The position numbers were made by a program, and so were the translations under genes. A DNA stretch of 64,000 nucleotides. Origin: Adineta vaga. Its lineage: Eukaryota; Animalia; Rotifera. Where the stretch lies: assembly GCA_021613535.1 (NCBI GenBank), contig CP075493.1, positions 15,996,001-16,060,000 on the forward strand, in the 5' to 3' direction. Position 1 is the first letter of the stretch. Every line of letters starts with the position of its first letter. Under the pieces are notes generated by a model. It was not told where the DNA came from. It did no database searches and saw only the letters and a list, made by a program, of their open reading frames with translations. Positions 743-62,140 of this stretch are shown here, in pieces.

Positions 743-801
743 CATCTTGAGGGTGTGGGTGTGTGAGTATATTACCTTATCCTAGATACCCACACCCACC
801 C
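743..801. repeat. Telomere-like inverted linker (two-armed)
   Basis: CATCTTGAGGGTGTGGGTGTGTG, ~22 nt spacer, then ACCCACACCCACCC. Confidence 0.9.
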
Positions 802-1301
802 AAATTTTAGATTTTAATGTATATTGGAAAAGAAAAAGAAATCTTTGTTTAATTGTTGTTGAATAAGATTCAACATTAACAAAACTTTGATGGTAAAGTA
901 TGAGTATAAATAAAAGCATGGTTATATAAGCTTTTAATTGAATGTAAAATCGGTTATTTTGTATTGATATTTATTTTTTTATTTGTCCTTAAGACAAAAA
1001 AAGATGAATCTTTTGTTTTATAATATAGATGTATTGCATATACACTTGCTTCTATATCCTTATGATAAATTTGATATTTCTTATGACAATATTGTGATTT
1101 TATCGTTCGAAATTTATATTGTTTGTTTTCTGTTCCAGGTGAATGAAAGAACATGGATTAATATAATCTAGGTTTTTTTCTCTTATGTATAAACATATAT
1201 ATATATATATCGTCGATTTTTTAACCGCAGTATTATTCATTCCCAATCCTACACGAAGATAAAATCGTCAAAATAAAATATATTTCAAATCTATTACTAC
1301 A

Positions 1302-1460
1302 ATGAGTAATATTCATAAATACGAAGAACTTCAAGTTGATGGTCTTAGAGCAGCTAGAAGACTTGGACTAGGAGGTGCACGACAACCTCAAAGATTGGGA
1401 TATGCTGCTCCGTTAGGATACGGAGGAAATACAGGACTTGGACGGGTAATGGACTTCTAA
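1302..1460 (+). CDS. Small Gly-rich ORF, possibly part of a Gly/Tyr-rich protein gene
   Basis: Hand translation MSNIHKYEELQVDGLRAARRLGLGGARQPQRLGYAAPLGYGGNTGLGRVMDF*; further Gly-rich coding-like sequence follows to ~1575. Confidence 0.3.
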   Translation: MSNIHKYEELQVDGLRAARRLGLGGARQPQRLGYAAPLGYGGNTGLGRVMDF

Positions 1461-1949
1461 GAGTTATTATGGTTCCGTTGTCACCACAATTTCTTATGGA
1501 TTATCAACAATTTTTTAATATTGGTTCTGGATTATTTGGATATGGATGTGGAGGACCAGGATTTGGTCGATTCTAAAAAGCAAAATAGTTTTACAAATCA
1601 AAAGAATAAGTCATTATTTTCTTTTAAAGTGAACAAAAATATTTCTTTACACAAAATGTGTATAATTTTATTAATCTAATTAATGATAATAAACTTATAT
1701 TCATATTATCACATAGACATGTACGTAAAAGAAATAGTTAGAATATAATTTTCATCATTCTAATAGTCATTTTCAATTTTTATGAATTATACAAAGGATG
1801 AATGCATCGATATGTTTTTTAAAAGCTGAAGCAATGAACAAGAAAAACTTTTTATTATTATTTTGTTAAACAGAATATTATTCGATGAATGGCGTTTTTA
1901 TCAACAGACCAAAAAAAGTCTCATCGTCGACGATTGAAATGAAATATTT

Positions 1950-4626
1950 TCAAAAGTAAGATGAAAACTTATCTTGTTGTTCGCCATCAATAGAAACATG
2001 ATGACGTATGAAAGTTTGAAGAATTTCATTATTTTCTTGAAGTCTTTGTTTCAAAATGTTCAATTCTCTTTCGAGATGAATAACTTTCGATGAAATATCT
2101 TCTTCAATAGTTTTTTCATCTTTGTTAAAAACAAGACGAAATAGCCATTGTGTTGGACGAAGAGATTTTCGTAAGAAAAATTTTAATAATGGTATAAACC
2201 AAAGTTTTGAGAAGAGAAAACTCATCGCAATTAAATCAATACAAAGGCCAATAAAAAGAAATGTATGAAAAATAATTTCCGAACGACGTGCAATTGGTTC
2301 TTGTTTATTTTTTATAAAAAAATCCGTTTCTTTAATTGTAATTAATAAATTTGTGACATGATTTGAAATTAGAATTTGTATCTGATGTTTTCTCTAATGG
2401 AATTGAACGATTAATTAATATTTGATGAAAATCATATTTATATTTTGAATACCAAAGTCCACTAATGATAGTTTCATCATTTTTTGTAAATCCTTCAGTA
2501 ATATTAATAATTCTTGTTAAATCTAAATTAATCAACGCATTTTGTGATAAACGATGATCGGAATTATTCAATCGTTTAGAAAAATTGAATTCTCGTGCAA
2601 AATTTGATTGAAATTCTAATTGTTTTGCTGTTAAACCTAAACGAATAGCTTCAATAAGATGATTTCCAAAGAATATTATTCTTAAAGTCATTTGTTGTAC
2701 TGGTAAACTTGATTTTATATGAAGATTCCTTCCATTTTGATAACATGTATATGGAAGAATCATTTTCTTTTCAAAATATTCAAAATATATTTGATGACAA
2801 TGAAAATCTGTTTGAAGAACATCAAGTTGAAAAATAAATATTTGTGAATTTAATAAATGAAAGATTGGTTGATATTCTTCAGATAAAATTGCAACATATT
2901 GTAAACTTGTTTCAAATTTTAAATTTCGAAGATCTTTTAATTGACATTCATTTATTTTGAATTGTAAATTTTCTTTTTCAATTGGATATTGTTTAGAAAA
3001 ATAATCACTAAATCGTGATGCAAATATAATAATAATTATAATTGAAATAGAAATCAGACCACCAAACCAAAGTTGACCTTCTCCGATTAAATCGAATGAA
3101 CGACAAATATCATGAAGTTTTTTTTGTTTTGATTGAAATCGTTTGATCATTTTCAATAGATACATCAATATAGAACATATGAGTATAAGAACAAATGAAA
3201 TTAAAATAAGAAAAAATGGAGAATGAAATCCACAATTTGTTTGAAAGATATAATAAAGAATTAAATCATCAAAAATATCGATTTCAGGTGATTGAGGATA
3301 CTTTGAATTTTGTTCAATATCTTCAAATTGATCAAAAAGTATTGGAAATTCACTTGGACAAAATTCTTTCTCGGTACATTGGGAACAAGTTTGATTTGTA
3401 GTAATTTCACAAGATTTACATAACCAAAATCCTGTTTCATTTTTATATGTTCCACGAGGACATTGTGCACCATTAGAAATCAATGAAAATATTAATCCGG
3501 GTGTGTCCGATAATTCACTATTTCTAGGAAATAAATTTGAAACTGAATAATAACCTACTCGTGAAGAAGTTAACATAAAAATACAATTATATTTCATTAA
3601 TATATATAACGTGTCATTGTTAAGAGAAACTTGTAAACTTCTTATTAATTCTGGTTCAGGTGAAAATTTTTGAATATCATTTGGAAATATATATATTGGT
3701 TTTAGAGAATCATCAAATTTTGTATTGATTTTCATGTCATATACAGAGAAAATCTTGTCGGAATACAAAAAAGAAAGAAATTTTTTACCGTGATTATACC
3801 ATCGAATTTCGTCAGAATCTGGAAAACGTTTTTGATCAATAAGATTAAATTTATTTGATTGATTCACAGTAAAAAGATAAGTCATAGCTCGTCTACTAAG
3901 TGTTAATATAATTCGTGTATTTGTTTGATTATCATTAAAAATATCCATCATCAAATTTTGACCAGCTTTGAAACCATCTTGTGGATCTTCTGTCCGTTGA
4001 TCCGTTATTGCAAAACTATGATTAATATTTAAAACAATTAAATAAAGAATACCAACACTACGAAATGTTCTATTACAACCGAGTAGAAATATATGTTGAT
4101 TATGATCAACTTTTAAAATCGTAGGAACAAATTGTGAAGACCAATTAAATAGTTTATAGGAATAACTTGTTAAATGAATTAAATCAAAAACTAAAATAGA
4201 CTCATCTGTACAACTATATGCAAATTCACCATTAGGATTAACATCTAATACATGTGAAGTTGGTTCATAGAATGTTGTATTAGAAAAGAAAACTGTATCT
4301 TGTTTTGATTGAGTATTATTACAATTAACAGTGACTTTTGTCATAAAATACATTGAATTCGATGAATTCATTCCTTGTACAACAAAATACAATTGAGAAT
4401 TTGTTTGTTCTTTTCCTAATGCAACTGAACGATGGTTTAAATTAGATAATTCTAATTGAATTTTTTGTGTTCTTTCAGATATGAATGATAAACATTGATA
4501 ATAAATCATATTGCTATCAGAAATAAACACTAATAGATGATCATTAACTGCTATATAATGACGATCAGAATCAATCACAGGAATTATTTCAAAGAAAAGT
4601 AATGATATTAAAAAAAATAAACGCAT
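1950..4626 (-). CDS. Multi-pass membrane protein with signal peptide and Cys-rich segment; apparent frameshift near 2340-2390
   Basis: 764 aa ORF (signal peptide, CPRGTYKNETGFWLCKSC, TM helices). Hydrophobic and coiled-coil C-terminus (EPIARRSEIIFHTFLFIGLCIDLIAMSFLFSKLW) continues in another frame to 1950. Confidence 0.6.
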
Positions 4627-5265
4627 TTTTTTTTCCCAAATACTTCTTGTTATTCTTTATTACATTCTCTTTATATTTGAATACTTTATGATAAAATATC
4701 ATAAGATCACGTCTATTATCAATATTAATCAAAACATTCGTTAGGTTTTTGTTGTTTTATTTGAAAAAAAAAAGATTGTTGTCATAGTCTAATATAAAAT
4801 TGACAAAAAATATTTTCTTTTGGAATATGGTAAATATCAAAATGTTAATAGTTTTTCTCATTGGATAATCTTTTTTTCTAAAGTCAGATATTCAATTTCG
4901 TTTGAACTATAAAAATAACGATGTACGTAAAAGACCAAACATTCGATATTTTCTGTTGTATGAAAGTTGATACTGCATACTCAATTTTAAGCAAGTACTC
5001 AAATATCAGATATTTACTTTAGTATAATAATAACAACTAAGGCTCGTCAGGCCGATTCACTCTACTCTCGACTGTGGAGGACGGGTATTTTTAGCTTGTG
5101 TCAATACCGAGACGAATTGATCTAGAAACCTAATATACAAGAAAATGACTCTCATGTGATTGTTTAAATATGTCATAACCTTTGAAAAGAAAAAAATTAA
5201 GTTTCTTCTCCTGAAATCAAATTCACCCCACACGCCGCTTTATAGCCCATCCACGATTTCACCCA

Positions 5266-5290
5266 ACACCCACACCCACACCCTCAAGAT
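5266..5290. repeat. Telomere-like linker, C-rich half-site
   Basis: ACACCCACACCCACACCCTCAAGAT. Confidence 0.85.
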
Positions 5291-5486
5291 AGCAATGCCA
5301 GATTCATAAAACCTTCGTATGGATCATCCGATCCATCCATTCCTGGCCAATCACGACGCCAGATCAAAGTTCCATCCGGACGTGTATAGCGTGCTACAAA
5401 TTCAAATGCAGCCTTATTTAGCTGATCGAATAATAAGCGTTCCATTAATGCCCATTGTGGAGGAATCATATGATTTTTTAATGAAA
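5291..5486 (-). pseudogene. 196-bp fragment of a bacterial-type hypothetical protein gene, capped by linkers at both ends
   Basis: Open frame PPQWALMERLLFDQLNKAAFEFVARYTRPDGTLIWRRDWPGMDGSDDPYEGFMNLALL; the ORF start and stop both lie within linker sequence. Confidence 0.6.
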
Positions 5487-5555
5487 TTGAGGGTGTGGGT
5501 TTCATTGTAAATAACTATACTATCCTCGCACCCACACCACCCACACCCTCAAGAT
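5487..5555. repeat. Telomere-like inverted linker (two-armed)
   Basis: TTGAGGGTGTGGGT, 28 nt spacer, then CACCCACACCACCCACACCCTCAAGAT. Confidence 0.9.
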
Positions 5556-6269
5556 TTTATAAAGCTGAAGAAATGTCGTGGCCCGATCAATTTAAATTAA
5601 AATTTTTATCAATATATCGTTGTTTATACAGTGAATATTTATATCTTCTTTATTGATTATCATATTTAGAAATATTTCAAGTACAATATATCGATATTGA
5701 TAATAAATCTATGTATTCGTCTTCATTTAATTCATAACTAACACATCTAAGCATCACATGTTGTTCTCTATCGACAGAACATCTTAGATCATTAATTTTA
5801 AAAACATCAAAACTTTATGAACTTAACTTGATTTATTCTGCTGATATTTTGAAATCCATAATTGATATTTATCAATGGGAAAATTTTATTCGAATTGAAT
5901 TAAGCTTTCTTAAGAAATTTCAATTCTACATTCCCTGTAAATTCTCCGAGAATGATACCATTCATCTAGATACAATAATAGCACCATTTCAAGATCCATT
6001 TTGGTTCAATAAAAAAACGTTGGTTTACTATTTGTGATCAAAAAATCGATACAAATAAATTAAATACCATATCATTTTTTACAATACCAACTATTAAATC
6101 TCTTTATGAATCGATGTTTGGATGTCAAGACGTAAAATGTGGAATTTCATTGAAAGATAATACTTATTATATAAATGATCTGCGAAGAGACAATATTACT
6201 TGTAACACTGTACATGATGTAAGTATATTACATCTTTCTCCTATACATATAATGATATTTGGCTGAGAT

Positions 6270-7807: not shown

Positions 7808-7930
7808 CATCTTGAGGGTGTGGTTTGTACCTACTAGATTGATAGTGATTTGTAATTGAACAAAAATTCAGTTGTCATTTTAATAAGAAGTTAAATTTTC
7901 TTTAAAAACACCGTCTCTGAGGGTGTTAAG
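7808..7930 (+). repeat. Two G-rich linker half-sites (7808-7823 and 7918-7930)
   Basis: CATCTTGAGGGTGTGG and TGAGGGTGTTAAG. Confidence 0.7.
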
Positions 7931-9894: not shown

Positions 9895-9948
9895 CTTGAG
9901 GGTGTGGATTAAGACTGTAGGCTAAAGTATACCCACACCCACACCCTC
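9895..9948. repeat. Telomere-like inverted linker (two-armed)
   Basis: CTTGAGGGTGTGG, 23 nt spacer, then ACCCACACCCACACCCTC. Confidence 0.9.
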
Positions 9949-10858
9949 GTTTGGTTTGTTAATCGAGATTGAACAGTGTATAATGCAACGTACTCATAAA
10001 CATTAATAATCTATTTATATTATACGAAAAAAACAAAAAGTTAATAAAGTATAACTGTAAGCAAGAAGTAACAAGCAACGTTTGTTATTTGTTCTCTCTC
10101 TATATATATATATATTACTGTAATATCACGTGGAAAAAAAATGTATATCACGATTAGAATCAATATAAATGTTTTTTAGGCATCACTTTCTATGTAGAGC
10201 ATTCATTATTAAATATAGGGTACAGAATTCAATAAATTTCTTTTTATCCTAGTGACAATATAAATTACAAAGCTATTCTAGAAATTTGAATGTTTTTTTA
10301 ATTAAATTGTATGATTTCATTAGAAAGACTATTCTAATAGTTTTTTTTTGTATGCAAAAATACAGTAAATGATTACAAAAATAGAATTTATTGTTGTATC
10401 TTTCTCGTGACATTGATAAGCATAATGTATTGGTAAATCGAAGATAAATTGAGTGATAGGCATACATAAACATTGAAATAAAAAAGGGTTTTTTTCTAAG
10501 CATACAAGCAGCTAACTAGAAAGAAAGGTAAAACCCAATCATCGATATGTCTCTTTCTCTCATTCAATGGGACAAGCCGTTTTTTGTATGAAAAAAGAGT
10601 AGAAGAAAAAAATGTATGATACCTGTGCATGACTATGAATTTTTTCTCTCATAAACATATTACTGATGTGTTTGTATAAGCCATATCTGCGTACAAAATC
10701 AAATATATCCTTGTGTATAGAGAGAGATAAATATTCTCTCTTGGTTATTACGTTAGATTTTTTATCTCTCTCGCCACCATTGAGTATATAACAGTGTGAA
10801 TATCAACATAAAATTACAAATATCTATCGATATTTCTCTTCAAATTAGCAATTACAAA

Positions 10859-11567: not shown

Positions 11568-11625
11568 CTTGAAGGGTGTGGGTGTGGGTGTTAGATGAAG
11601 GTAAGAATAGGTGTCTCTTCTCAAG
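11568..11625. repeat. Telomere-like linker (G arm intact, C arm degenerate)
   Basis: CTTGAAGGGTGTGGGTGTGGGTGT ... CTCTTCTCAAG. Confidence 0.75.
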
Positions 11626-12766: not shown

Positions 12767-13009
12767 TAATAAACAGTTTAATTGTTTGAAATAAACGAAA
12801 TAAACTTGAATTATTTTTTTGTTGTAAAAACTTCTTGTGAAATTTTGATCAAGAAATAAATACATCATAGGATCAAGGACTGGCAACTCTTCCAGATTTT
12901 TATGTTTTTTATTAAATTACATTTGATGTATTTTAATTCTAGCTGAATTACAAATTCAACTGAACTTTTTATTATTTATTGTACAGGAATTTCTGAACGT
13001 TTTTTTGAC

Positions 13010-13025
13010 GAGGGTGAGGGTGTGT
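13010..13025 (+). repeat. Telomere-like linker, G-rich half-site
   Basis: GAGGGTGAGGGTGTGT. Confidence 0.6.
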
Positions 13026-13365
13026 AGCTGCTGCCATGGACATCTCTGATGAAAACGTTGAAAGAATAAAATCGAAAAACAAGTCAATATTCTCAAATGT
13101 GATTTTTCGTTTAACTTAATAAACGTTTCATCACACAGTCATTCCTGACAATGTGGTCTAGAGAGGACACGAAAGCTTGAATTTATATTTTTATTTTCTG
13201 TTAGAAATATGATTTTCACAGCAGTTATCTCTCTTTTCTCTCATTTACTTTTCTTCTGTGTATTTATTATTCAAATTAAAGACAATCAGTTTCTGATAAA
13301 TAAAGAGGGTGAGCGTAAGTATGTCGATTTACTTTTACTCTCATCAATCATAGCGTCGAAGTCAG

Positions 13366-15294
13366 TTATAATTTCTTTTTTACAATTTCAATACTCTTTC
13401 GAACACTTTCAAGATCAGGATGATTAGGAGGTAGTGCACGTTTTCGAATATCTAGAGCACGTTCGAAAAATGAAAGCGCTTTTGAATAATCATTTGTTTG
13501 TCTATAAGCCCAACCGATGTTGCTGTAAGAAGTAGCTAAACTGGGATGACCTGGTGGAAGAACTTTTTCTTTGATTTCCAATGCTTTTTCATAATAGGAA
13601 AGTGCTTTCGAATAGTCACCCAAATCATCATATACACCTCCGATATTGTTGTACGAAGTAGCCAACTGAGGATCATTTGTAGAAAGAGTTTTTTGACGAA
13701 TTTCCAATGCTTTTTCATAAGATGACAATGCTTTGGAATTCTCACCCATCTTCCAATATATTGCAGCAATGTTGTTGCAAGATGTAGCCACATCAGAGTG
13801 TGTGGGTGGCAAAATCTTCTGAAGGATTTCGTATGATTTTTCATAAAATGCAAGTGCTTCCGCATTTGCTTCTTGATTATCTTTTACTAATCCTAGCATA
13901 TGATAAATATTTGCTTTATCATGCTCATTTGTTGTTTGACCAAGCATGATTTCAAATATTTGTTGTGCCTTGTTAAATTGTCCAATTTTAATCAATAAAT
14001 TGCCTAATCGGTACCATCCTGTAAGATGAGGAAATATCTCTTGTCGTATACGTTCAGTTAAACTACGAAGTTGCGGATCGTTATCATTGGTTAGAGTTAA
14101 ATTCACTTGCCAAAGGCGATTATTCCCATCCATTTGTTCGATTTGTTCGATGCGAAAGACCGAGTGCATAGAGAAGAGAATTTCTTCTTCTCCTTCAAAA
14201 CAACTGACGTTGCGCACATTAGCGAATGGTGTTGAAGGAATAGAGGAATCGATGTTCATGACGAATAATATACCCATCATATCGGATGTTTCCATAGTTT
14301 GACGAGCAAAGCTAAGAGATACTTGACGATTAGTACTCGTGGATAAGAAATTATTAAATGATAGTAGACCACCTTTTGTTTCCATCATTTGGTCAAAGTC
14401 CTTTTGAGACAAACCTTGACCACGATATACGGAGAATGAGGCGTTGCGATCATGCCCGGCGAACTGTGTTGAATGAAGTTCGGTTAGGTGCTGATGTAAG
14501 TCGTGAATAAAAAAGCCCATGGTCACGATGAGTTCCACGTCCATCGTACGTAAACATCGATTAAGCGTGCTGTACAGAAATGACTGATAAGTGTACCACC
14601 AGACAGGTGTGTGTAGACGATATTCACGCTCAATTTTGTCGACATTTTTTAATTCGATATTATTACCAACCAATTGCTCACGAAAGTATTGAATAAAATC
14701 ATTAATATGTACTTGTTCAAAGTCGATGGTTAAAAGTATTTCCTTCAGTATCTGAGTATACATGAAAGATTGATCTAATTGATCAAGATTATTATTTTTT
14801 ATTCCACCACTAAATGGTACGAAGCTCATTGAAATGTTGTTTTGATCACAATCTTGGACGGTCTTTTTCAGTGCTTTACAGATAGATTCTATCTCTGTGA
14901 AGACACCCTTTACTTTAGGCCATTCTTGAGTCCATTGTTCATTTCGTTTCTGTTTTCCACAAAAAATGAAAATAGTACTTATCTGTGGTTTGTCGTGCAC
15001 AATGGGTACTGTTGTTTGTCCATATGCATCTGAAAAGATGATAAATGCTTTTTCTTCTTGTATGCCATCAATGAAGTTAACACAGTCATCGACATCTGTG
15101 AATGTATAGATGGTATTTACAATTCCACGTAGTTGTGAAATGGTGTTTTGACAGTCCCTGTTGTCTGCACTGATATTGGCATCGAGCCAAAGCAGTAAAA
15201 AATTTTGAATCCGATGTGCACGAGATGGCCTTCGAAATCTTACGTTCGTACATTGTGGAGTCGCAGCCGTTGTTTGATATTTTTTCTCGGTCAT
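13366..15294 (-). CDS. NAD:arginine ADP-ribosyltransferase-like domain plus C-terminal TPR repeats
   Basis: Intact ORF with VYRGQG, FLSTS and EEE (R-S-E) motifs and several kinesin-light-chain-like TPRs; ATG at 15294 chosen as start. Confidence 0.85.
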   Translation of the reverse strand: MTEKKYQTTAATPQCTNVRFRRPSRAHRIQNFLLLWLDANISADNRDCQNTISQLRGIVNTIYTFTDVDDCVNFIDGIQEEKAFIIFSDAYGQTTVPIVHDKPQISTIFIFCGKQKRNEQWTQEWPKVKGVFTEIESICKALKKTVQDCDQNNISMSFVPFSGGIKNNNLDQLDQSFMYTQILKEILLTIDFEQVHINDFIQYFREQLVGNNIELKNVDKIEREYRLHTPVWWYTYQSFLYSTLNRCLRTMDVELIVTMGFFIHDLHQHLTELHSTQFAGHDRNASFSVYRGQGLSQKDFDQMMETKGGLLSFNNFLSTSTNRQVSLSFARQTMETSDMMGILFVMNIDSSIPSTPFANVRNVSCFEGEEEILFSMHSVFRIEQIEQMDGNNRLWQVNLTLTNDNDPQLRSLTERIRQEIFPHLTGWYRLGNLLIKIGQFNKAQQIFEIMLGQTTNEHDKANIYHMLGLVKDNQEANAEALAFYEKSYEILQKILPPTHSDVATSCNNIAAIYWKMGENSKALSSYEKALEIRQKTLSTNDPQLATSYNNIGGVYDDLGDYSKALSYYEKALEIKEKVLPPGHPSLATSYSNIGWAYRQTNDYSKALSFFERALDIRKRALPPNHPDLESVRKSIEIVKKKL

Positions 15295-15557
15295 GTAGAG
15301 TGTGAACGAACGAACAAAATACTTCACTTTATATAATATCTGATTTTTTTCTTTCTATCTAACTTCTTCCATTGTCAGAATTGTCACAAGACAAACGGGA
15401 GATGAATAACAGAAAACTCACGTGGTAACGAATGAAAGAACGCAAAAAATATGTCCTTAAGTTCCGTTTGTTGTCAATGACAGTGGAGAAAAAAATCCTT
15501 ACACTCCCTTTTGATCAGATGTTCGGAGATGCAACTATATCCTAGTTGGAGAGAACT

Positions 15558-15763
15558 TCGGATACTTTAATGGTAGAACAGCCGACCGGTTATCGGAAGA
15601 TGTAGGTTCGAGTCCTGCTCTGATTTAATGATCTTTCTTTACAAGTTTTTCGTACTTTTTTAGACATTTCCATGTGGTTGCATTTTATTGAAATTTATTT
15701 ATATTTCCGTGGATAGAAGATGTGATTACTTAAGTTTTTTAACTCTTTAAATAAATTATCTAA
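15558..15763 (+). mobile_element. tRNA-headed SINE-like repeat, copy 1
   Basis: Box A-like TAATGGTAGAA, box B GGTTCGAGTCC; ~180 bp closely matches 40083-40265; ends directly in a (CACACC)n half-site. Confidence 0.65.
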
Positions 15764-15789
15764 ACACACCTACACCCACACCCTCACCC
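15764..15789. repeat. Telomere-like linker, C-rich half-site
   Basis: ACACACCTACACCCACACCCTCACCC. Confidence 0.85.
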
Positions 15790-16736
15790 GCATTTCTCGG
15801 TAGATATGTTCTTTCAAAATCACTTATTACATCTTGTTGTGAAATATTTTCATTTGAATATTGCTGACGGCAATAAGTAATTAAATCATTTATAGATGTT
15901 TGATTACAAATAGATAGATCAAATAAACTTTCAATTAGTAAATAATACCAAGTAAATGATGTAGTTTTACTTTGATTTGTTGATTCTTCTATTGGTAAAG
16001 GATCAAGAATACTTACAGATGTTAAATCTTTTGTACATACTTCGATATCTTCGATAATTAAACGAAATAATTCAGTTGTATTATTTAAAATTTGAAGATT
16101 AAATTTCTTTGAAATTGTAATTACTTGATCATTCGTTGTGTTTTGTTCATTTGTTAAAACATATAAATATAATTTGTAAAAAATCATCTAAGAATGGTAG
16201 AATATCATATGCCAATTCATAATCAATGATTAAAAATATATTTGATGTTTTTAATTCACTGATAAAATCAATAAGAGCATCATTTGAATAATATATTATA
16301 ATATTTCTACCATGTAATGATTCATTTTGCTTTGTATTATCATTGGTTAACCAAATAATACAAACATAATTATCGATTGGTTCAATAAATTCAGATTTTG
16401 TTGTATTTAAACATTCCCGTAGAAGATTATTACTAAAAGGATTTTCATCAGTTAAAAATGATCTATCTAATAATAGAAATGATCGTTGATAATCTTCTTC
16501 AAGTTTTTCTTCCGTTTTATTCATTTATAAGTAATACCTATGTGATAATATATACGTGAATATATTCACATGTTTGCCAAGTGCTCGTTTTGGAAGAAGA
16601 GAATGAATAAGCAGTGAACCGTAGAAAATTATTTTGATTTTGATGATTGCTTGCAAAAAATGACTCATCATATTTAGTCATATATTTTAGTTTTCGTTTT
16701 GATGAGAATATAGTTGAATTTTTGCTCATCGCCTTT
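15790..16736 (-). pseudogene. 5' part of an ART-family-like gene; frameshifted, transposon-interrupted, truncated at a linker
   Basis: IIWL and LITYCRQQY..ISDFERTYLPRNA resemble the N-terminal region of the ART-TPR paralogs; the frame runs straight into the linker (GEGVGV). Confidence 0.55.
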
Positions 16737-18724
16737 CCCATGTGAAATTTTTTTGGTTATAAACGCGTTTGAAAACGCATCCGAAACGCGTCTTATAAAC
16801 GCATCTGGACGCATCCTACATGAAACATCTGATGCGTCTAGATGCGTTTCGAGGATGCGTTCAGATGCGTTTCACAGATGCGTTTAGACGCGCTTGAAAA
16901 CAAAACGCGTTCAAACGCATCCGAATAATCGGTGAAACACCTGACGCGTCAGACGCGTTTCGAAAAAATTGCAAAAAAAAAGATTTTTTTGTACTCTTAG
17001 ATTTGAACTATGTTACCATCAGAACCTCATGATGGTCATCTCTATCCTAGTGGCATAGTACAGAATATATTTTATGACTTACATAATTAATTTTGATTTG
17101 TGCGATGAACGAGACTAGAACATATGAACATGTGAATAGAAAACAAGTGACTTACGATTGAGCCATATATGCTCGATGAACTATCATTTATATATAGATA
17201 TCATTTTAAAATTCAATTCTACTTAAATAATAAATGTCTTTATAGCAAAGAATTATATTTTCGATTAGATTACATATTTTCTGATATTCATAATTAATTA
17301 ATATTCAGTTCAATAACAGAAACCATCTTTTATCAAAACTCGTATATATTTTCATATTTAGTTTACTTTGATCTATATTGGAAAATAAAATAAGCTAATT
17401 GAAGTATAAAATAGAATTATTTAAGAAAAATATGAATCTTATTCGAATTTTAATAATACAAAAAAACATAAAAATTCGAGAATTAGTTTTTTGAACTATC
17501 ATGAAAAAAAGTTACTTCGACGAAGAAACAAATTTATCTTTCTATTTTTTATATTTAATTCAAATGTAAACAAAAATCTTATAGTTTTAACAATATTTCG
17601 TAAAAAGATCCATTAAAATATGAAATACAAATTAAATTCAATAAAATAAATAATTACAATTGAATAATTATTATCTAATATTTTCTTTTCTACAAGATCA
17701 AAAACGAAATATATTTATTTATATATAATAAGAATAGTAAACTCTTTATTCTCTAAATATTAAATGAAAAACAAAAAAAAAATGAGAATTATGTGAATAT
17801 TATTTATAAATACATCTTCTATTTTCTTGAGTTCTATTATTTTGTTTTGATAAACTTCTTTACACATTTGGTTGGTTTTCTTTCCAATCAATAATGTTAA
17901 AGGATTATTTATATTTAAATTTTGTTTATGAAAATTATTCCTTTTACCTCTATTCTATATCTGCAATTCATGTTTTTGATTAAATACTTCTTTTCCCATT
18001 TGCGTAATTTAAACTGAAATCTTCGACTAAAAAAAAGAATTTCAATGGAAACAGAACTAAAATAGTCTATATGATAAAGATATTAACTTCTGTTCTAAGA
18101 TGACACAATTATATAGAAATATTTCATGACTCGTATCTAATCAACAACAACTCTTAAATTTATTGAATCAAACACAAAAAAATATTTTCTAAAACCATAG
18201 TTTTATCTTTATATCAAAAAGCTGTTTCGAGACCTTTTTATCGAAATCCATTCGCATCTGGAACGCGTCTGAACGCGTTTATCATCCAGGTTATCTCTAA
18301 AACGCATTCGAATATCAACATTAGTGAAACGCGTTCCTATTTCCAACGCGCTTAATCGCGTTTCTTAGATCAAACGCGTTAGAACGCACGTATCAGACGC
18401 GTCTAAACGCTTTCTAAGTTCAGACGCATCGGGACGCATGTTTCAGACGCGTCTAAACGCTTTCTCAGTCCAAACGCAGTAGGACGCGTGCTTCAAACGC
18501 GTGCAAACGCTCTCGTCTCAGGAAATGGGCAAAAACGCGATATAGAAACGAAACGCGTTTATGTTTTAAGTGCGTCTGGACGCGTTTCTTACTAGGAACG
18601 CGTTCGAACGCGCCCATAGGATGCGTTTAAACGCGGTACAAGTATCATTTGAAACATTAAACGCGTTCAAACGCAGACTAAACGCGTTTAAACGCGTTTT
18701 TTCTGCGTTTCAGTGTTACATGGG
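16737..18724. mobile_element. Non-autonomous TIR DNA transposon (CMC/EnSpm-like) with subterminal ACGCGT arrays
   Basis: Ends CCCATGT...ACATGGG; TT on both flanks; dense AAACGCGTTT/ACGCATC repeats at 16760-16960 and 18250-18710; removing it restores the frame NNVFLKAMSK. Confidence 0.75.
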
Positions 18725-20102: not shown

Positions 20103-20165
20103 CATCTTGAGGGTGGGTGTGAGTAGATATCTAAGCAAAACACCCAAACCCATACCCCTCAGGAT
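20103..20165. repeat. Telomere-like inverted linker (two-armed, partly diverged)
   Basis: CATCTTGAGGGTGGGTGTGAGT, spacer, then ACACCCAAACCCATACCCCTCAGGAT. Confidence 0.85.
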
Positions 20166-42729: not shown

Positions 42730-43237
42730 AGAAATACTAATTTAATTAGTGTGTTTTTGTCTTGCTTCTTTACTTCTGCTTTCAATGTGGTTGTGAAAGT
42801 ATTACTTCTGTATGTGAAAATAAACGGTTTTTTTTGAGCGAATATATTTAAGTTCGAATACATATCTATAGAGCGAATGTGTGTGACGTAGGATATCCTA
42901 GAATAAGATTCGTGTTTTTCTACAATGGATTCGACTACAGACCAATTCCAACTCTGATCTCATTGGTCCCAAGTAGATATCGAAGAGCTCTATCGATCCC
43001 ATATATCACTTATTTTCGAGACCTCCGCCCCTACCGCCGAAAAATGCAAAATATTGTTAAAAAAAGGCCGCAAAATTGCTCAAACTTTAGTAATATCCTC
43101 TGGGATTCGCCACTCAATCGATTCCAACACTGTCATCACTGGTTCCAAGTAGAGCTCGATTAGCTCTATTGATTGCACTAAAGATTTTCCTCATTAGATC
43201 CTTCCTTACCCGTTAAAAGCTGAAAATACTACTAGAA

Positions 43238-43286
43238 AGGGTGTGGGTCAGACTATACTCTTAACTCACACCCACACCCTCAGGAT
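43238..43286. repeat. Telomere-like inverted linker (two-armed)
   Basis: AGGGTGTGGGT, spacer CAGACTATACTCTTA, then ACTCACACCCACACCCTCAGGAT. Confidence 0.9.
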
Positions 43287-44322
43287 TCCATTCCCAATGA
43301 TACCAACAATAAGAAGAAAATAACCAGTATAGAGTACTTATTGTTGAACATCGTACAACAATGTCATATTGATAAAATGCGTAAATTAAATAAAAAGAAC
43401 TTTAATATAATCAACAGAAGAAAAGTGCGATCGTGCAGTTTGTAAGCTTATATTATATAGAATCTATATTTGTATTTTATTACTATAAATTAAATATTTT
43501 CTTTTGTAAAATGTATCCACGAACTTCTATTCTTTCATCCAGTTGTAATAAACGACATTGATATTGAGACTTCATCTATTGAATATAATTGAATTTAATG
43601 ATTATCTTTTTAAAATGTTAATACAGGAGAATTTAAAGTTGAAAATATTTCAATATTACTCGATCTCGCTAATACTTGAGTGAAAAAAGAAGATCGAAGG
43701 GATCTAAACGAAGTAAAATGAAGATTTGTGTGTGAGAGTCACATATTTATATATCAACTTCATCGACATTATCAAGATTAGATGCAATGCATTAATTTAT
43801 TATAGTAGCATATGTTACTTGGAAACATACTCAAAGATGAAATGAAATATACGCTGTTTGACAACTTTCCAATACAAAGTAGTAGGCCTGCAAACGTATT
43901 TTATATACATTTAATCATTGATTCAAATTAAGGTGAACTCGTATTAGTTGAAATGAATAGTGGTGTTTCGTCTATAGTTCAACAAATTGGCATACATGAA
44001 AACCAAGCTTTCATTTTAGCATTGCTTCGAAAAATAGAAAGTATAGAGAGTGAGAGAATTTATAATTAAAATAGTGAACACATATAGATATGAATATTTA
44101 TTTTCATAAAGAGAAAATAAGATTAGTGACTCTTGCTTGTTCTTTTCTACCACGCAGATGTTATAATCTATATGATGCTCTATAACGTATTGAATCCGGT
44201 ATGAAGAACAACAACGACATTAGCTTGCGACGTATGCGACGAAATACAACATCATTTAGTTAGTTATTGTTTGCAAATGAAAATCTTGATTTCTGTTCCT
44301 TTATTATTATCATCTTTTTTCT

Positions 44323-46439: not shown

Positions 46440-47320
46440 GAAACAGAGATTATAATGATAATGAATTAGAACAAAGTACAACTTGGCTATATGCTTGTCT
46501 TGTAATCGGTAAGTGATATTGAAATTTTTTCTTTTTAATCTTTTCTAAAACTGACGTGAGTTAAGCACTATGAAACACATTGAAAATAAGAATGAGAGTA
46601 GAAATTACATTTGGTTTGCTACGGAGAAAATCATGAAAGTCTTTCTTTGTATATTTCATAAAAATTCTAAATCACTCTTTTGTTTCTATTTATTCTTTAC
46701 TTTCTTTAGTCTCTCTTTATATTATATTTTATATTACCTTATTACAACCACATTCTGAAATAATCAATGTATTCGATATTACGCATGATATCATTGAACA
46801 ATTACGAATGGAACATGCTGAAACTCTTTCATGTCCGTGTAAGATAACGAGCATATCCTATAAAACTTTCATGACCAATACGATCACATTACATCCTGTT
46901 TGTTCGAGTATTTTTGTGACGGATGCATGGGCCGAAGCTTTTTATCTTCAAGATCCAGGTGCGACCTGGACGCAAGATTTCACAAAAGTAGCTTATTCAG
47001 TAGTAAGTAAAAGTTCCATTTTTGCCAAATCACGTATCCTGATTTGATGGAAGGACTTATTCAGAATTTACTTTGATTAATTTTCTTTTCGTTTAGTTCA
47101 AGCTGTTGGCCAATCTATGCACATTGTGCAATAATATAAAAGATCAAAATAAGATTGATTTATACAATCGCGAGCTTCTCACTATCGAACTGCTCTCCAA
47201 AGAGCAACTTGAATCTCAAACAGAGTTCCTTGTTGAAATGTTTAAAAACAGTACCGCTATTCAAATTATCTCGCATATAGCGACTATCTCAGAACTATGA
47301 CCCATGCAAATTCGTTTTGT
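46440..47320 (+). pseudogene. 5' part of a multi-exon membrane-protein gene, truncated at a linker
   Basis: TWLYACLVI|intron...TLSCPCKITSISY...LHPVCSSIFV exons; coding-like sequence stops at 47320. Confidence 0.55.
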
Positions 47321-47370
47321 TGGGTGTGGGTGTAGAAGAAATGCCTCGGCCCACCCACCCACACCCTCAA
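47321..47370. repeat. Telomere-like inverted linker (two-armed)
   Basis: TGGGTGTGGGTGT, 16 nt spacer, then CCCACCCACCCACACCCTCAA. Confidence 0.9.
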
Positions 47371-47982
47371 ATTATTCCGGAATTTTTCATGTCGTAATAT
47401 AAATCATATTTGTACTCCAGCTTCATTTCTTTTACGTTATTTTATTATCTTAGCATAAATTGATCGATATTATGCTAGTGCAACGAATGTACATTTACGA
47501 AAATTTAGTTCTGTTTGTCAAATTAGTCAGTGGATGATTTTCAGTTGTATTAAATTATTTGCACTCTTTTTCATTAACATTCTAATTCGATACAATCTAC
47601 AACAAGCAACAAGCTATACTTATGGTCTGCAAAGAAATTCTCTCGATAATCAAATATTTATAATAACATCAGTTTTTCTGTTTGCTACAATTCCATCTTG
47701 TTTTATGATTCTTTTTCTATGGTTTTCCAACTATTGATAACACAAAAAGAATTAACTCGAATATTATTTTTTCAAGTGACTGTAGATATTTTACTAATTT
47801 TACTAGCAATTGTTGTCTATCTTATATCTAGTATCGTATTTATAGAAAAGAACTTATAATAATAATAATAATAATAATTCATAGAACAGTGACATCTTTA
47901 AATTTGAAAAAACACTTGCTTGTTTCTTTTCTTCCATAGTTCATGTAAATGAAGATGGCAAACTCGATAATATTCATAAAAA

Positions 47983-49830: not shown

Positions 49831-49948
49831 ACATAATTATGTTTTTTTGAGAGTGAAGATGTTTTATCCTTTTTTTCGTCAGAACTACATGTTTTTTTTT
49901 TAAATTTTTGTTCAATAGATATATATACAATGTGATGTTACTTTAAAT

Positions 49949-50005
49949 AGGGTGTGGGTGTGTGTACGAGAATGGTATAACACTCACACCCACCCACACC
50001 CTCAA
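49949..50005. repeat. Telomere-like inverted linker (two-armed); a further half-site lies at 50245-50257
   Basis: AGGGTGTGGGTGTGTGT, 14 nt spacer, then ACACTCACACCCACCCACACCCTCAA. Confidence 0.9.
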
Positions 50006-50571
50006 TCTATGATTTTATTGAGTATTTTTTCAATCAAAAGAAACAAAATATGTTCAATTATTAAGAAATTTTATGCTTATTTAGCTATACGTTTTAGAAA
50101 TCGAAAAGAATATTATCCATATACCTATATGTGATGAAACACGGTTGTCTATTGCGTATAATTTGTTTCTTCGAGAAAAACATTTCATTTGTAGATTTTT
50201 ACTTTCTTCTGTATTCGAAGATGAAGATGTAGGTTTTTATGCAAACTCACACCCTCACTTGATATTGTTGTATTTTGTTTATTTCACAATTAGTTGAGAA
50301 TATTCTTAGTTTTATTCCATTGTATAATCTACATATAAAAAAAAACATGTGTTTAGTCAACCAATTGCTTACATATAGCGTAACAAATTGACTTTTGCAT
50401 GAATAATTTTAATGATGCTCTTAACTTGTCAATTTTTGTAACATAATGATTATCTTCTTTTTTTTTACAACGTGAGGATAAAAAGAAAAAGTTTCAGGTG
50501 CAAAAATATTCATCAAGAAATATAGATTGTTTTCTTCTTGTTATAATTGCCATATATAATCGAACATCAAT

Positions 50572-53044: not shown

Positions 53045-53603
53045 TCTTCACAATTCTCGTCCTTGTTGATTAACTTATTGCAGTTTTTTTTCTCTTTTAA
53101 TCAACTATTTGTTATAGAAGAAATAAACATGGCATTTTATCCCGAAAATTTTCAGCGATGCAAAAACACACTTAGTAATGTATTATATGATGTGTAGAAA
53201 AAGAAAGGAAAATATTTGAGTGAGAGAAAAGAATATTGAATTACTTTCTTCAAACCATTTCTGAAATTGAATATATAATTATCATTTTAAATATTCGCCT
53301 GGCGACAGAAAAGAAGAAATTAGCACTGAGATATGGATTTATTTTTTTTGTTCTTAGTTTATTCTGTTGATCGCAATTTTAACAAAATAAACTCTGAGTG
53401 TTTTTAGAAGACATAAGCATAAAAGGTCATCAATGAGGATATGAATGTCAATATAGATTTAAATATTAGTATTCATAAACCACCCTCAACTTCAAATTAC
53501 AACGAATAGAACTGACAGATCACTACTAAAATGCAAGGGTAATACGTTACAATAGATACAAAATATTAAAAGACAATTGTTAATTTAATCTTGTGCTCAA
53601 GTA

Positions 53604-53652
53604 AGGGTGTGGGTGTTGAAAGAGAAGACCCCCTCACCCACACCCTCAAGAT
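53604..53652. repeat. Telomere-like inverted linker (two-armed); a short half-site lies at 53480-53489
   Basis: AGGGTGTGGGTGT, 18 nt spacer, then CACCCACACCCTCAAGAT. Confidence 0.9.
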
Positions 53653-54647
53653 TAAAATGTATTATTGTCTATTATTCGACCATTATGCATGTTAAAATGC
53701 CGCTTTTCAGGTGAATAATGATAGTATGACCATTAAAATCCCATTTAGTTTTAGAAGCTATCATTTCGAGCATTTTTACGAGAATGAACTCTGAGTTTCA
53801 AAGTTTAAAACTGCTTACAAAAATATTCAGAGATTCCTGAGATCGTGTAGTGTTCATATTTTTACCCGAAGAAGTCTCTCCAGCTGAACTTCATACGAGT
53901 TCTATCAGAAGCCAATTGAGTGGATTTTGGATAGATATACTACATGAAAAGGAAAATTGAGTGTTACAATTTTTTATCAGGTTAATATCTTAAATAGTGC
54001 TCCTGGTGTAATCAGACATATTTTTATAACTTCTAATTCTGTAATATTTGATAAATTTATCGTCTTCTTTAAATACTTTACTTGATCTAGTTTGCATTTC
54101 TACTCATGATGATTATAAGAAAAGAGATTGACTGTTTTGATAAATGCGCTAGCGTAAAACGAATCGTTTTCTTTTTTACATCTTTCACACGAATCTCTAA
54201 CGCTGATCAAGCAGTGGATTCTGCTAGTGCCGATGCTAACTGTCCATTGAGGATTTAAGCAAAGAATTCGAATAAACATGTTACTTGAGCTGATATTATA
54301 TATAGTGCACCATTGGAAGTACCACCACTGAAATATTTTTTAAGTTTCTTTTCTCGAGAATATTACGACACAATTCATAAACGTTGAATTTTTACGTCAA
54401 GAAAGAAAGAAAGAATAAAAAAAGAAAGAGAACTCGCATTATTCCACATAAATGACTTGGCTCGTACCGCTGTAAGTAGTATGACGATGCAAATAAATGA
54501 ACGAAAGATTCTTACAGCACGCAAAGTACATTACTGCTGGACTGCATCATCATTACACAGGCAAAAAAACTAGAGTACCATATTCTCTTATAAATATAGA
54601 AAGTGTTCTAGTAACATTATAAACATTTTTTCAAGAAAGAATAGAAA

Positions 54648-56847: not shown

Positions 56848-57307
56848 TTATCCTTTTTTTTTCTTTCTCACTTAAGCAGGCCTTTCTGCATAGCTAATGT
56901 CCTATTTTGTTTGTATAATCATGAATTACATATATTATTAATAAATTACGTATATCTCTTATATTGTCTAATGCATATTGAGAACTTTCTCATTGAAACA
57001 AATAACCAAAGAAAATAAAAATATCAAACATGTACAGAATGAGCTAAATGTCTCAGTGCTTCAAAGAAAACCTACATTTCTCCCGTATTACAGATCATAA
57101 AGTGCTCAAAGTTGCACATACAGTTTCCCAGAATTCATTTTTATCATAAATACAAGTTCTAGATTTTTACACGTCGTTATTGTTTTTTTTGTTATTTGGA
57201 TAACCTTTCTTATAAATCAGATGTTAAAATTAGAAAAATGTATAAAATCAGAAAGAAAACTGCCGATGTTCAAAAGACTCTTCAGGTGGCTTTATTATAA
57301 CAACATA

Positions 57308-57322
57308 TGAGGGTGTGAGTGT
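57308..57322 (+). repeat. Telomere-like G-rich half-site fused to a mariner fragment
   Basis: TGAGGGTGTGAGTGT followed directly by CAAAGATATTATTCATTGG. Confidence 0.7.
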
Positions 57323-57822
57323 CAAAGATATTATTCATTGGGAAGTTCTTCCTACTGGTTGCACCGCCACTGCTGATCTCTACTGTCAGCAATTGGATCG
57401 AGTTGCAGCAAAACTTCATGGAAAGCAAGAAAGAGTTTATTTTTTGCATGACAACGCCAGACCTCACATTGCAAAGTCGACTCGTGAAAAATTATTGAAG
57501 CTCGGATGGATTACACTTCCGCATCCACCTTACTCTCCTGACTTGCTCCCAACAGATAACCATTTGTTTCGTTCTCTTTCTAGTTATTTGGACGAGAAAA
57601 GATTCGACGACGAGAACGACCTGAAAACGGATCTGTCCAACTTCTTCCACCAAAAATCTCAAGACTTTTACGAAGGCGGAATCCTTTCTCTTCCGTAACG
57701 CTAGCGACAAGTCGTAGATAGTAATGGAGCATACATTCTTGAAAGCTAGTTGTATTTTTTAAGTTAAAAAATAAAAAGAAGTTTTTCGAAAAAAACCGAA
57801 AAAATTTCTTGCCAACCTAATA
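57323..57822 (+). mobile_element. Mariner transposon 3' fragment with right TIR
   Basis: HDNARPH and HPPYSPDL..D motifs; ends TTGCCAACCTAA-TA. Confidence 0.9.
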
Positions 57823-58469
57823 TTAAGATTTTATTATTTTCTCAGGCTGAGGTATTGAAGAAATAAAAATGTTTATAAATATTTTTTGCTTTTTTACATA
57901 TTTAGAAAAATGTAACTTTTCATATTCTCACCAAAAGAAATAGCCTTGAAGAGAGGCTTTAGAAACTTTGCAGTATACAAAAAAAAATTATGTTCTGCTG
58001 TTTCGAACAAAAAAATAATATTCGATTAAGCTTGTTTAGTAATGGAGTTATAGGCATTTCTTATCGACGGGTTACTTATGGTCTACTCTATATTTCTCTT
58101 CTTTTTATCATCACAAACCTTTACATTCAAAATGAATAATCTTAATAATTTTTTGCTCTAATTTCACACCGACTTTTTAATTAAATTTTCATACTATTTA
58201 TAAATTCTTTACACTAACATTTTGCTATAAGGTGATTTAGATTGCAAAAAAAATTAGAAATAATGTAAACCGAAATGACGACATTTTATTAATCGAATAA
58301 ATTTAGTTTTAGGCTTTAATTGCCAAGGATTAAATATCACCTACTTTTATTGAGAAAAAAATTTCTTTAAACAACAAACATTTTTCATTAGAAAAAATGT
58401 AATCTGACTAAAAAGATCGATTCTTACTAAACAGATTTTCCCTTAATTCCTATTAAATTGACATATAGA

Positions 58470-59483: not shown

Positions 59484-60246
59484 AAATATGAAGAATTAAA
59501 ATATATTTATATTCAATTATATATGTTGTGTAGTTATGTGATTTGCTGTCTCGTAAAATTTATTGCAGTTAAAATATTAAAAAAAAGAACATCTTGTCAG
59601 CTTTAAATTTGTGTTCAACTTCTATCAACAAATATAGTTTAATATCAGTAATATAACTATTATCACTGGAAGCATGGAAGATAACAACTTCATTAGTTTT
59701 ACAATATTAACTCAAATTTTTCATTCTTTTAAGTCAACAGTTCAACAATAAATAAATGAAAGTTCTTGTAATAGAAACAAAAGATAAATTAACAAGTTTA
59801 CAAATAAATACTTAACTGCCAGTTTGATTATTGATCACAGTAACATCCATCTTTCCATCATGACTAAAATCATCAATGGCCAAAAAAAATTATTATTGAA
59901 TTTGATTTCAGTAGTGTCGCGTTAATTTGGTTGCATAACCATTAATTAGACTAACGTCTCGTCTCTCGTCTAATCTTTATAATCATTATGCGAAAGAAAA
60001 TGTCTAAGTCTTGGAACACGATTTTCTCCATACATGTATAACTTGAAACTTGAATTTAACTATTCAAGTATTCATTCCTATACTTGAACAAGCAACGTTC
60101 GCCGCTTCGACTCAATTAACCTCGACTGTGGAAGCCAGAGGTATTTTTCGCATGTGTTGGTGTCGGGAGAACTCATCCAGCAGCTTTATCCAAATAATGA
60201 AGAGTTAACTGACTTACACTCTTTAATTCATAATAACTCTAATAAT

Positions 60247-60765
60247 TATTGGGTTGGTAAGAAATTTTTCGCGTTTTTTCAAAAAAAATTTTTTCATTTT
60301 TTAAATATAAGAATACAATCATCAATCAACAATGTATGCTCCATTATTCTCTATGACCTGTCGCCAACGCTCTGGCAGAGAGAGGATATCCATTTTGAGG
60401 TCGTTCTCGTCTTCGAATTTTTTCTCACGTAAATAATTGGAGAGAGAACGGTACTGGTGGTAGTCCGTAGGAGTCAAGTCAGGAGAATAAGGTGCATGGG
60501 GAACGGTGCTTCATCCAAGCTCCAATAATTTTTGCCGTGTCAACTTTGCTACATGGGGTCTAGCATTATCGTGCAAAAAATAATTCAATCTTCTTTTCCT
60601 TTGAGTTTTTCGGTAACCCAATCCAATTGCTGACAATAAAGATCAGCTGTGATGTTGCAGCCGTTTGGAATCATTTTTCAATGAATAATCTCTTTGATTC
60701 CACACCACACGCTCAGTATCACCTTCTTTAGACGTAGATCAGTCTTGGGCGTTGGTACACCTGCT
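60247..60765 (-). mobile_element. Mariner transposon 3' fragment (degenerate) with TIR, truncated at a linker
   Basis: LSVWCG, HDNARPHVA and HAPYSPDL with internal stops; TIR TA-TTGGGTTGGTAAGAAA at 60247. Confidence 0.85.
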
Positions 60766-60828
60766 TGGGTGTGGGTGTGAGTGATGAAAAAGAACACATC
60801 CACCCACACCCACATCCGCACCCTCGAG
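60766..60828. repeat. Telomere-like inverted linker (two-armed)
   Basis: TGGGTGTGGGTGTGAGTG, 12 nt spacer, then ACATCCACCCACACCCACATCCGCACCCTCGAG. Confidence 0.9.
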
Positions 60829-62097
60829 GACCATATACTCCATTTCCAATTATTCGTCAAAGAAATGAAGAAAGAGCTCTTCAACTATTAAATAACAATA
60901 CAAACTTAAATCTTTCGTCCATTTTTGACCGTCATAAGGTATTAAAATCTAGTCGTGTATAGATACATGCTAAAGAAAATAATATTTTATTTAGCGAAGA
61001 TCAAGATTTCTTAACAACTATGCACGAATGGTTTATTTCGAAAAACAAATTCTTAACCAAATCAACTATTGGTCTTATTCATATATTTAGTATACAATTA
61101 GCTAATCTTGTTATTGATTTACAAATTTCTTCGATAAATCATATCAAAACTTTAAAATCAATGTTTAATATTGTCGAAGCATATAAGTCTGATCATCTTG
61201 ATATACCTCGTATAATAGCGAACATTCGTAAAAGTTATGATTTACAAAATACTGACGAAATTTTGTCATTTTTTTTCTTAATATTATCAACAAGGTATAT
61301 CAGATTCAATTGTCAATGGTTAAGTTTTTGCACATGGAGATATTTGGTCATCGAATATTTTAATTAATGAAAATGATTCGACATTGAGTATTTTGGATTG
61401 GGAGTGGTCAGGTGTTTGATCAACTGCACATGATCTAGGTATATTTCTTTCACATTCTCATGTTCAAATGTTAATCAAGCCTTCAAATGAAAGTTCATGA
61501 TGCTGTATGAATGCATTTACAGGTGCTTAAAAAGAGAATGCTCAACGATATAAAGTTAGTTGGTATGAAAATGAACAAGAAAAATATTTCTTTGCATGGA
61601 CATTAGGTATTCTTCATGCAATTGATATATTATTCTGGGCAACTTTTTTTTAACTTGTTCTTCGAATGAAGAAAAAATATGTTATCATACACGTTGTCTC
61701 GTAACAGAAAATGTCGATCAGGTCCAAACAGAACTACTTATGATGCTATGGTAAATGATCAATTATTTGGTAGACTTTTCCAAGATCATCAATAAATACA
61801 CTATGAACAATAGTTGAAATGAACAAAGGAGGGAAAAGCGGACCCTCATAGATCCTAGGATCCATAAGGAGCCAATTCAGTCGAATTTTTTTAAAACTAA
61901 ATAATTGAATTAACAGCAGAATTATCGACGATAAATACAGCATAAAGAGAATTTGATAAAAATTGAACCAATTCGACCAGATTTAGCTATTTTATCCAAC
62001 AAATTCGAGGGACACAAAAAATCTTGGAGGATCCACTCTTCCCCCTTGCATAAAACTGTGTCTATTGAGATGTCAACCATTCGTGAATGGTGATAGC

Positions 62098-62140
62098 TGA
62101 GGTGAACCTAGTAATGTTAGCTAATCTCACCCACACCCAC
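62098..62140. repeat. Telomere-like linker, degenerate G arm
   Basis: TGAGGTG ... CTCACCCACACCCAC. Confidence 0.6.

Follow-up and report, generated by a model that had tools for sequence, protein, structure and literature searches.

A 64,000-bp stretch of the genome of the bdelloid rotifer Adineta vaga (hereafter the window) is a subtelomeric patchwork of genes and of gene and transposon fragments, joined by modules of 50–70 bp, each built of two short inward-facing telomere-repeat tracts and found about once per 3 kb. We favour the reading that the modules are scars of DNA breaks, formed by a templated cap-and-join process in which existing units or an RNA are the source of new copies, and give it about an even chance of being correct. 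The window comprises C1:15,996,001-16,060,000 and lies ~2.1 Mb from the right end of the 18.15-Mb contig C1, in a genome of 100.8 Mb resolved into six contigs.

Design and abundance of the telomere-repeat modules

Every one of the 17 complete modules runs, without exception, from a G-rich arm through a 10–35-nt spacer to a C-rich arm. The arm motif TGAGGGTGTGGGTGT has 40 matches with at most two mismatches in the window, compared with 0.02 expected from shuffles, and a block scan found 57 telomere-like blocks, compared with 1–14 in shuffles. These 57 blocks resolve into 17 G→C pairs (the C arm no more than 60 nt after the G arm) and ~10 half sites (block-scan starts at 5262, 7811, 11570, 13009, 15764, 29920, 40264, 50242, 57306 and 62125). 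The initial annotation, made from the letters of the window, had described head-to-head repeat modules in which the G arm always precedes the C arm. Both points are borne out: the modules are real and above chance, and a strict genome-wide pattern with perfect 13-mers on both sides returned 25 sites in the G→C order and none in either the C→G or the direct order. A slightly looser G→C pair pattern gave 78 sites in the genome, and a perfect 20-mer spanning arm and leader occurs 152 times, mostly near contig ends. Because the 78-site pattern catches only 1 of the 17 window pairs, the genomic total of modules, extrapolated from these 78 strict sites, is probably near a thousand. The listed module sites lie mostly toward contig ends, with few in central positions, and on C1 the zone extends back to ~10.9 Mb.

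The regular appearance of the modules is the only feature that recalls assembly or library artefacts, i.e., adapter-like chimeric joins. Four modules (39806, 40268, 42093 and 43238) are bridged by Logan contigs of three separate studies, and a contig from a 2013 study spans 43238-43285 and carries single-nucleotide polymorphisms (SNPs), of allelic type, and small indels relative to the window. Since independent assemblies bridge four of them, the modules are not assembly chimeras; copies also carry independent mutations and fall into diverged families. The chimera possibility, for which the initial annotation had suggested a junction check, is therefore refuted, and we regard its residual probability as negligible. 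The Logan runs share one organism label, so that the bridging proves the joints real and is silent on their age; the joint 39482→39806 was left out of this evidence, since it lies in a repeat and one of its sides comprises just 28 nt.

In the consensus arm, the leader CATCTTGA precedes a run of GGGTGT hexamers, of which there are mostly one to three. TGAGGG is nearly always the outermost repeat of the arm, and arms without a leader mostly begin at AGGG or GGG. The arm hexamers are TGTGGG and TGAGGG, and each unit terminates in (CCCACA)n on either strand. TGTGGG is the published telomeric repeat of A. vaga (PMC7943196, PMC8494291), and CCCTCA (TGAGGG) variants are present in the one true telomere reached, at the start of C4, in agreement with the earlier naming of both hexamers as telomeric repeats. 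The inner junction of this telomere shows only TCA (the sole contig end reaching a telomere; n = 1).

In 30 fetched copies of one spacer type (family A, described below), the outer arm ends are independently full, partial or absent, and the number of hexamers varies. Among ~27 distinct copies, each side was full in ~30%, partial in 25% and absent in 45%, and no copy had both sides full. Copies with a perfect 17-nt spacer core likewise have outer ends that are full, partial or missing on either side. Some 70% of the outer ends lack part or all of their sequence, copies with a perfect core included, so that the truncation dates from the birth of the unit and not from decay. No target-site duplications were found in 42 units and the 30 family A copies whose flanks were inspected; this absence, and the variation of the arms by whole or partial hexamers, had both been noted in the initial annotation and stand.

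The best copies have a strong hairpin potential (z −4 to −10), their spacing is near one per gene and most are intergenic, as would be expected of selected cis-elements such as terminators, insulators, origins or small-RNA sources. Such a role is, in our estimation, very improbable. Arm mutations of older copies are uncompensated (e.g., at 30916 and 35690), indicating that hairpin pairing is not being maintained; in addition, many copies are half or truncated, units occur at broken genes and transposons, and the RNA-like contigs examined stop short of units. A snap-back (self-primed) origin of the inverted arms is ruled out, as the flanks are no inverted copies of each other and the hexamer count of one arm differs from that of the other.

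Spacer families and sequence discontinuities at the arms

Eleven of the 17 window spacers match a spacer family at p ≤ 0.05, so that the earlier description of the spacers as mostly unique has to be given up. With no more than one mismatch allowed, the 17-nt family A core, GAGTGAAGAAGATATAC, occurs 98 times in the genome, as compared with 1 for the reversed control. Of 30 fetched copies, 29 lie inside one common ~64-bp unit (exemplar L053:1478-1545, minus strand), and both inner junctions, from core to arm, are constant in the 30 copies. Families B (TAAGAGTATAGTCTGA) and C (ACTACATCTATCTAAT) show the same behaviour. The orientation of the family A core is independent of the chromosome arm, and one irregular arm recurs in L043 and L052, two copies whose loci are unrelated. 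Because the spacers fall into families with constant junctions, whole units are copied or templated rather than built from random filler. The spacer of the unit at 24267 ends with the same 12 nt (AATTATCTAAAC) that precede the tail of a SINE-like (short interspersed element-like) repeat, which ties spacers to tail-bearing retroelement RNAs. A search for a telomerase RNA among the family A core matches gave no candidate: apart from a single match in coding sequence, all copies carry both arms, and L049 was rejected for lacking a CCCACA template.

These families bear directly on an alternative in which telomerase alone heals both ends of a break and end-joining with random filler follows, leaving a spacer without a dedicated template. 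Such healing would explain the head-to-head polarity, the leader (cf. the mouse TERC-ITS loci, i.e., interstitial telomeric sequences; PMC2246262), arms of about one template pass, the microhomologies of 2–3 nt at the joints (see below) and the absent duplications. The spacers, however, are non-random, and the constant junctions of the 98-copy family A core to both arms are not what random filler would leave; we therefore consider this explanation improbable.

Sequence discontinuities at the modules were assessed by flank comparisons with paralogs within this genome. Six units had testable flanks, and five of them lie at discontinuities, while one (36963) has continuous flanks. The piece at 5290-5484 (−) encodes the N-terminal ~64 residues of a protein of ~630 aa; the reading frame stops exactly at the arm, and the opposite end of the piece adjoins the next unit (5486). 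Full-length relatives of this piece are bacterial hypothetical proteins of Devosia, Paradevosia and Microbacterium (62–71% identity over the stretch). Homology of 86–89% to C6:1.65 Mb begins at 30973, three bases inside the arm, with an unrelated left flank, and the upstream 2 kb of this C6 paralog have no match anywhere in the window. Homology to two paralogs begins at 43284/43285, and the left flank of the 43238 unit is unrelated, with no homology (score 22 vs 20.7 ± 3.0). A mariner transposase fragment at 57312-57830 (+) begins within its open reading frame (ORF) at a G arm (57312), and an inverted second mariner fragment at 60240-60767 (−) ends within its ORF at another G arm (60767). At the joints 5289, 30973 and 43285, the native flank and the leader have 2–3 nt in common (n = 3 joints only). 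The closest paralogs of the segments are scattered over other chromosome ends. The segments were also considered as mobile cassettes with their own arms; this was rejected, as segment paralogs carry no arms at the homologous boundary.

Two of these loci deserve a separate remark. The public gene model P0001 (623 aa; 2335-5505, −) is a chimera of the 64-codon bacterial-type first exon and an unrelated 764-aa ORF (2332-4626), and its first six codons, MKPTPS, are read from the telomere-like arm. The two inverted mariner fragments flank a G protein-coupled receptor segment that is 91% identical to C3:16.75 Mb.

The modules could alternatively be tiny foldback or MITE-like (miniature inverted-repeat transposable element-like) DNA transposons with telomere-like terminal inverted repeats, inserted by a transposase, with the discontinuities arising later via ectopic recombination or deletion between copies. 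They are indeed short, palindrome-ended and multi-copy (cores of ~100 copies, arms of no more than 20 bp), with a conserved interior and subfamilies A, B and C; one copy lies within a continuous gene (36963), and the two copies with common arm irregularities sit at unrelated loci. On the other hand, target-site duplications are absent, the termini are imprecise, with ~70% of outer ends incomplete from birth and a variable hexamer number, 5 of the 6 testable flank pairs are discontinuous, units lie mostly at discontinuities, and no longer element with these termini was found in 274 kb of sequence examined. Transposition is thus unlikely in our judgement, although we rank it above healing by telomerase alone. 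Even under this alternative, mobile DNA in the form of a break-seeking palindromic mini-element made of telomeric repeats would be out of the ordinary.

A possible templated cap-and-join origin and its relation to known systems

In a templated cap-and-join process, the joined ends may belong to a single break or to separate ones, or a loose fragment may supply them. A DNA 3′ end would prime on a C-rich RNA through 2–3 nt of microhomology. The 3′ flank of this template RNA would read ...UCAAGAUG, which would account both for the leader and for the variability of its start. A telomerase- or Athena-type reverse transcriptase would copy the leader, the hexamers via (ACACCC)n and then a short body, which would become the spacer. 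Subsequently, the C-rich product, or a template jump, would pair with the G-tail of the second end, and this pairing would account for the constant inner junctions as well as for the variable hexamer number and outer ends. Spacer families exist that have derived changes in common, so the template was probably transcribed from earlier units, and the result would be a self-perpetuating 'retro-linker'. Were telomerase RNA the template, a CCCACACCCUCA template with AGAUG immediately 3′ would yield the leader. Repeated cycles in a break-prone subtelomere could give rise to the mosaic, composed of genes along with fragments of foreign genes and of transposons. Such cap-and-join would produce the polarity, the short arms, the absence of duplications and the joints between unrelated DNA; which enzyme acts, and the steps beyond it, we infer. 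Precedents exist for parts of this scheme: at mammalian break sites, telomerase mediates the insertion of repeats and template-adjacent nucleotides (PMC2246262), and in A. vaga lines, newly arisen deletion breakpoints contained telomeric repeats and Athena fragments (PMC13564844).

The initial annotation had supposed that broken or captured ends receive templated repeats plus extra nucleotides and are then ligated. The joining of capped ends agrees with the telomere polarity, the position of several arms where continuous sequence stops and the scattered paralogs; the spacers, however, are not random extra nucleotides, and not every linker joins foreign pieces. A more far-reaching version, which we offer only tentatively and believe less likely than its opposite, holds that small palindrome-ended retro-linker RNAs from earlier joints are copied by a telomerase- or Athena-type reverse transcriptase onto a broken or foreign DNA end. 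Their C-rich product, pairing with the G-tail of another healed end, would splice any two ends, give foreign and rearranged DNA its physical way into bdelloid subtelomeres and leave in each of the ~1,000 units a dated record of one event.

Several observations weigh against a templated cap-and-join origin. The teneurin-like gene that contains the unit at 36963-37012 is continuous apart from it, and the C6 paralog of this gene keeps the EGF and NHL parts in order. The flanks of the unit, 36784-36950 and 37031-37145, align to overlapping ~100 bp of paralog L036; these overlapping alignments may reflect a diverged target duplication, as if two copies broken at different points were joined. Some mosaic boundaries have no unit (33406-33747), and one 92% duplicate, that of the segment 25164-29256, terminates 57 nt away from an arm and not at it. 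As to the question raised in the initial annotation, whether homology ends exactly at the arms, five arm edges coincide with real discontinuities. The excess of homology ends at arms is modest (~5–6 vs 1.5 expected, a rough count from window searches), and a small locus-against-locus set showed no arm excess (2 of 124 homology ends). The conserved whole units and the arm irregularities shared by L043 and L052 equally fit a copied mobile element. Moreover, the microhomology argument rests on three joints, genomic Terminon 3′ tails are not followed by the leader CATCTTGA, and no RNA contig was found over a module (one RNA-like run examined).

Among known systems, the modules resemble break-repair interstitial telomeric sequences of the TERC-ITS type (PMC2246262), which likewise consist of hexamer tracts of the species' own telomeric repeat, placed at breaks, and lack a target-site duplication. 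Those sequences carry a few template-adjacent, RNA-copied nucleotides before the first repeat and show microhomology at the break, to which the leader and the 2–3 nt at three joints of the modules may correspond; two break ends can prime there on the RNA in opposite orientation. The A. vaga modules differ in having two facing tracts and a conserved spacer, in forming families of ~100 or more copies, and in recurring every ~3 kb over megabases, where they often join unrelated DNA rather than re-seal one break. With Athena/Terminon elements (PMC6431247, PMC3846280) they have in common the subtelomeric position, a 3′ tail of the (ACACCC)n type, which those elements pair with G-rich ends and which every unit has in the form of (CCCACA)n, truncated copies bounded by short telomeric tracts, and host genes between units. 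Unlike these elements, the modules contain neither an ORF nor a hammerhead, their tracts are inverted and not direct, and they are not co-oriented by chromosome arm.

The initial annotation had also likened the window to an integron array. Integron attC arrays do place imperfect palindromes between gene-sized units, but the window has no recombinase domain among its ORFs and no co-oriented promoterless cassettes: there is no integrase, the genes lie on both strands with introns and their own signals, fragments are bounded as well as genes, and the host is a eukaryote. The comparison is therefore not upheld. Relics of head-to-head telomere fusion, such as human 2q13, show G-strand followed by C-strand polarity at the join of former chromosome ends. 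In contrast to such relics, the modules have 1–3 hexamers and a leader, a templated spacer and about a thousand sites instead of one.

Short interstitial telomeric tracts and Athena-linked gene capture are already known from bdelloid subtelomeres. For inverted, leader-bearing units with spacer families, no description was found in the literature searched by motif and topic; key earlier papers lie outside that search, so a prior description is possible. The modules bear on how bdelloids rebuild shattered chromosomes and take up foreign DNA at chromosome ends. If the cap-and-join reading is true, the genome contains about a thousand sequence-readable scars whose leader, hexamer count and spacer report the enzyme and the template, and the mechanism could be tested in lines exposed to irradiation or desiccation and dated with the help of comparative genomics.

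Retroelement tails and other features of the window

Two of the sites that the initial annotation listed as half linkers, 15764 and 40266 (40264 in the block scan), turned out to be the (ACACCC)n tails of a transfer RNA (tRNA)-derived SINE-like repeat. Its match to tRNA is weak (31 bits), and its ~30 genomic copies are all distal. Athena/Terminon RNAs use (ACACCC)n tails to pair with G-overhangs, and host genes are captured between their units (PMC6431247); the SINE-like repeat is likely a non-autonomous passenger of an Athena-type reverse transcriptase. The window ORFs of at least 150 aa were found to contain no reverse transcriptase domain. True Terminon ends elsewhere in the genome consist of a hammerhead and a tail. 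Terminon 3′ ends were rejected as the source of the leader, as TCAAGATG does not come after the tail at either L021 or L022. Among Rfam families, the window has two tRNA-like matches only and no hammerhead; a CTGATGA...GAAA string at 13040 was rejected as a hammerhead, being on the wrong strand and without helix II. The coordinates of the modules, half sites and related features are collected in Table 1.

Table 1. Modules, half sites and associated features of the window (window coordinates; block pair as delimited by the block scan)
Feature	Position	Block pair	Strand	Remark
Complete unit	743-802	746-802		Full leader and G arm, spacer, C arm without leader
C-arm half site with leader	5262-5291			Bacterial-type gene fragment ends exactly here
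195-bp segment, first ~64 codons of bacterial-type gene	5290-5484		−	Arm at each end, telomere polarity
Complete unit	5486-5555	5486-5553		Homology of three paralogs to right-hand gene begins at 5554-5556
G-arm half site, full leader	7808-7826			
Complete unit, spacer family B-like (block pair identical to unit)	9895-9950			
G-arm half site or degenerate unit	11568-11594			
G-arm half site	13009-13026			
tRNA-derived SINE-like repeat, (ACACCC)n tail	15558-15792		+	Explains apparent half linker at 15764
Complete unit, both leaders nearly full	20103-20165	20106-20157		
Complete unit	24266-24351	24267-24337		Spacer end is the SINE-type 3′ end AATTATCTAAAC before C tract
Complete unit, spacer family C	25047-25107	25047-25103		
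C-rich half site	29920-29941			
Complete unit	30004-30052	30004-30049		Left arm without leader, right arm with full leader
Complete unit, family B	30913-30976	30916-30975		Paralog homology begins at 30973
Complete unit	35688-35744	35690-35743		Uncompensated arm mutations
Complete unit, family A	36963-37013	36963-37012		Between EGF and NHL exons of teneurin-like gene
Complete unit, family A-like	39806-39866	39807-39865		
5′-truncated SINE-like copy, (ACACCC)n tail	40083-40294		+	Explains apparent half linker at 40264/40266
Complete unit	42091-42150	42091-42147		
Complete unit, family B	43236-43287	43236-43284		Homology edge; bridged by independent contig
Complete unit	47319-47372	47319-47371		
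Complete unit	49947-50007	49947-50006		
C-rich half site	50242-50259			
Complete unit, family A-like	53601-53653	53601-53650		
G-arm half site	57306-57323			Adjoins mariner transposase fragment cut within ORF
Complete unit, family A-like	60763-60829	60763-60828		Inverted second mariner fragment stops at 60767
C-rich half site	62125-62142			

Other repeats and genes of the window were also noted. To the right of the unit at 20103-20165, at a distance of 45 nt, is a good tRNA gene with a CAT anticodon (20210-20282, +; 49.6 bits). The stretch 24272-24415 (~145 bp), i.e., the 24267 unit together with the next 60 bp, is a repeat of ~10 copies with 75–88% identity. The 60-bp part at 24355-24415 alone has more than 25 copies at ~92% identity and may form one end of an element frequently adjoining telomeric tracts. 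A ~2-kb AT-rich repeat at 16736-18724, present in at least six copies of 90–96% identity on several contigs and without an ORF of at least 150 aa, is probably a young non-autonomous transposon. Within the teneurin-like gene, a ~218-bp repeat at 37504-37721 has more than 20 copies at ~80% identity. The segment at 25164-29256 (4.1 kb) carries a DUF6055 gene, and its 92% copy is inverted and lies 260 kb away, at C1:15736594-15740692. The ORF at 13366-15327 (−) encodes an ADP-ribosyltransferase domain and TPR repeats and has dozens of paralogs, as a member of a very large TPR family.

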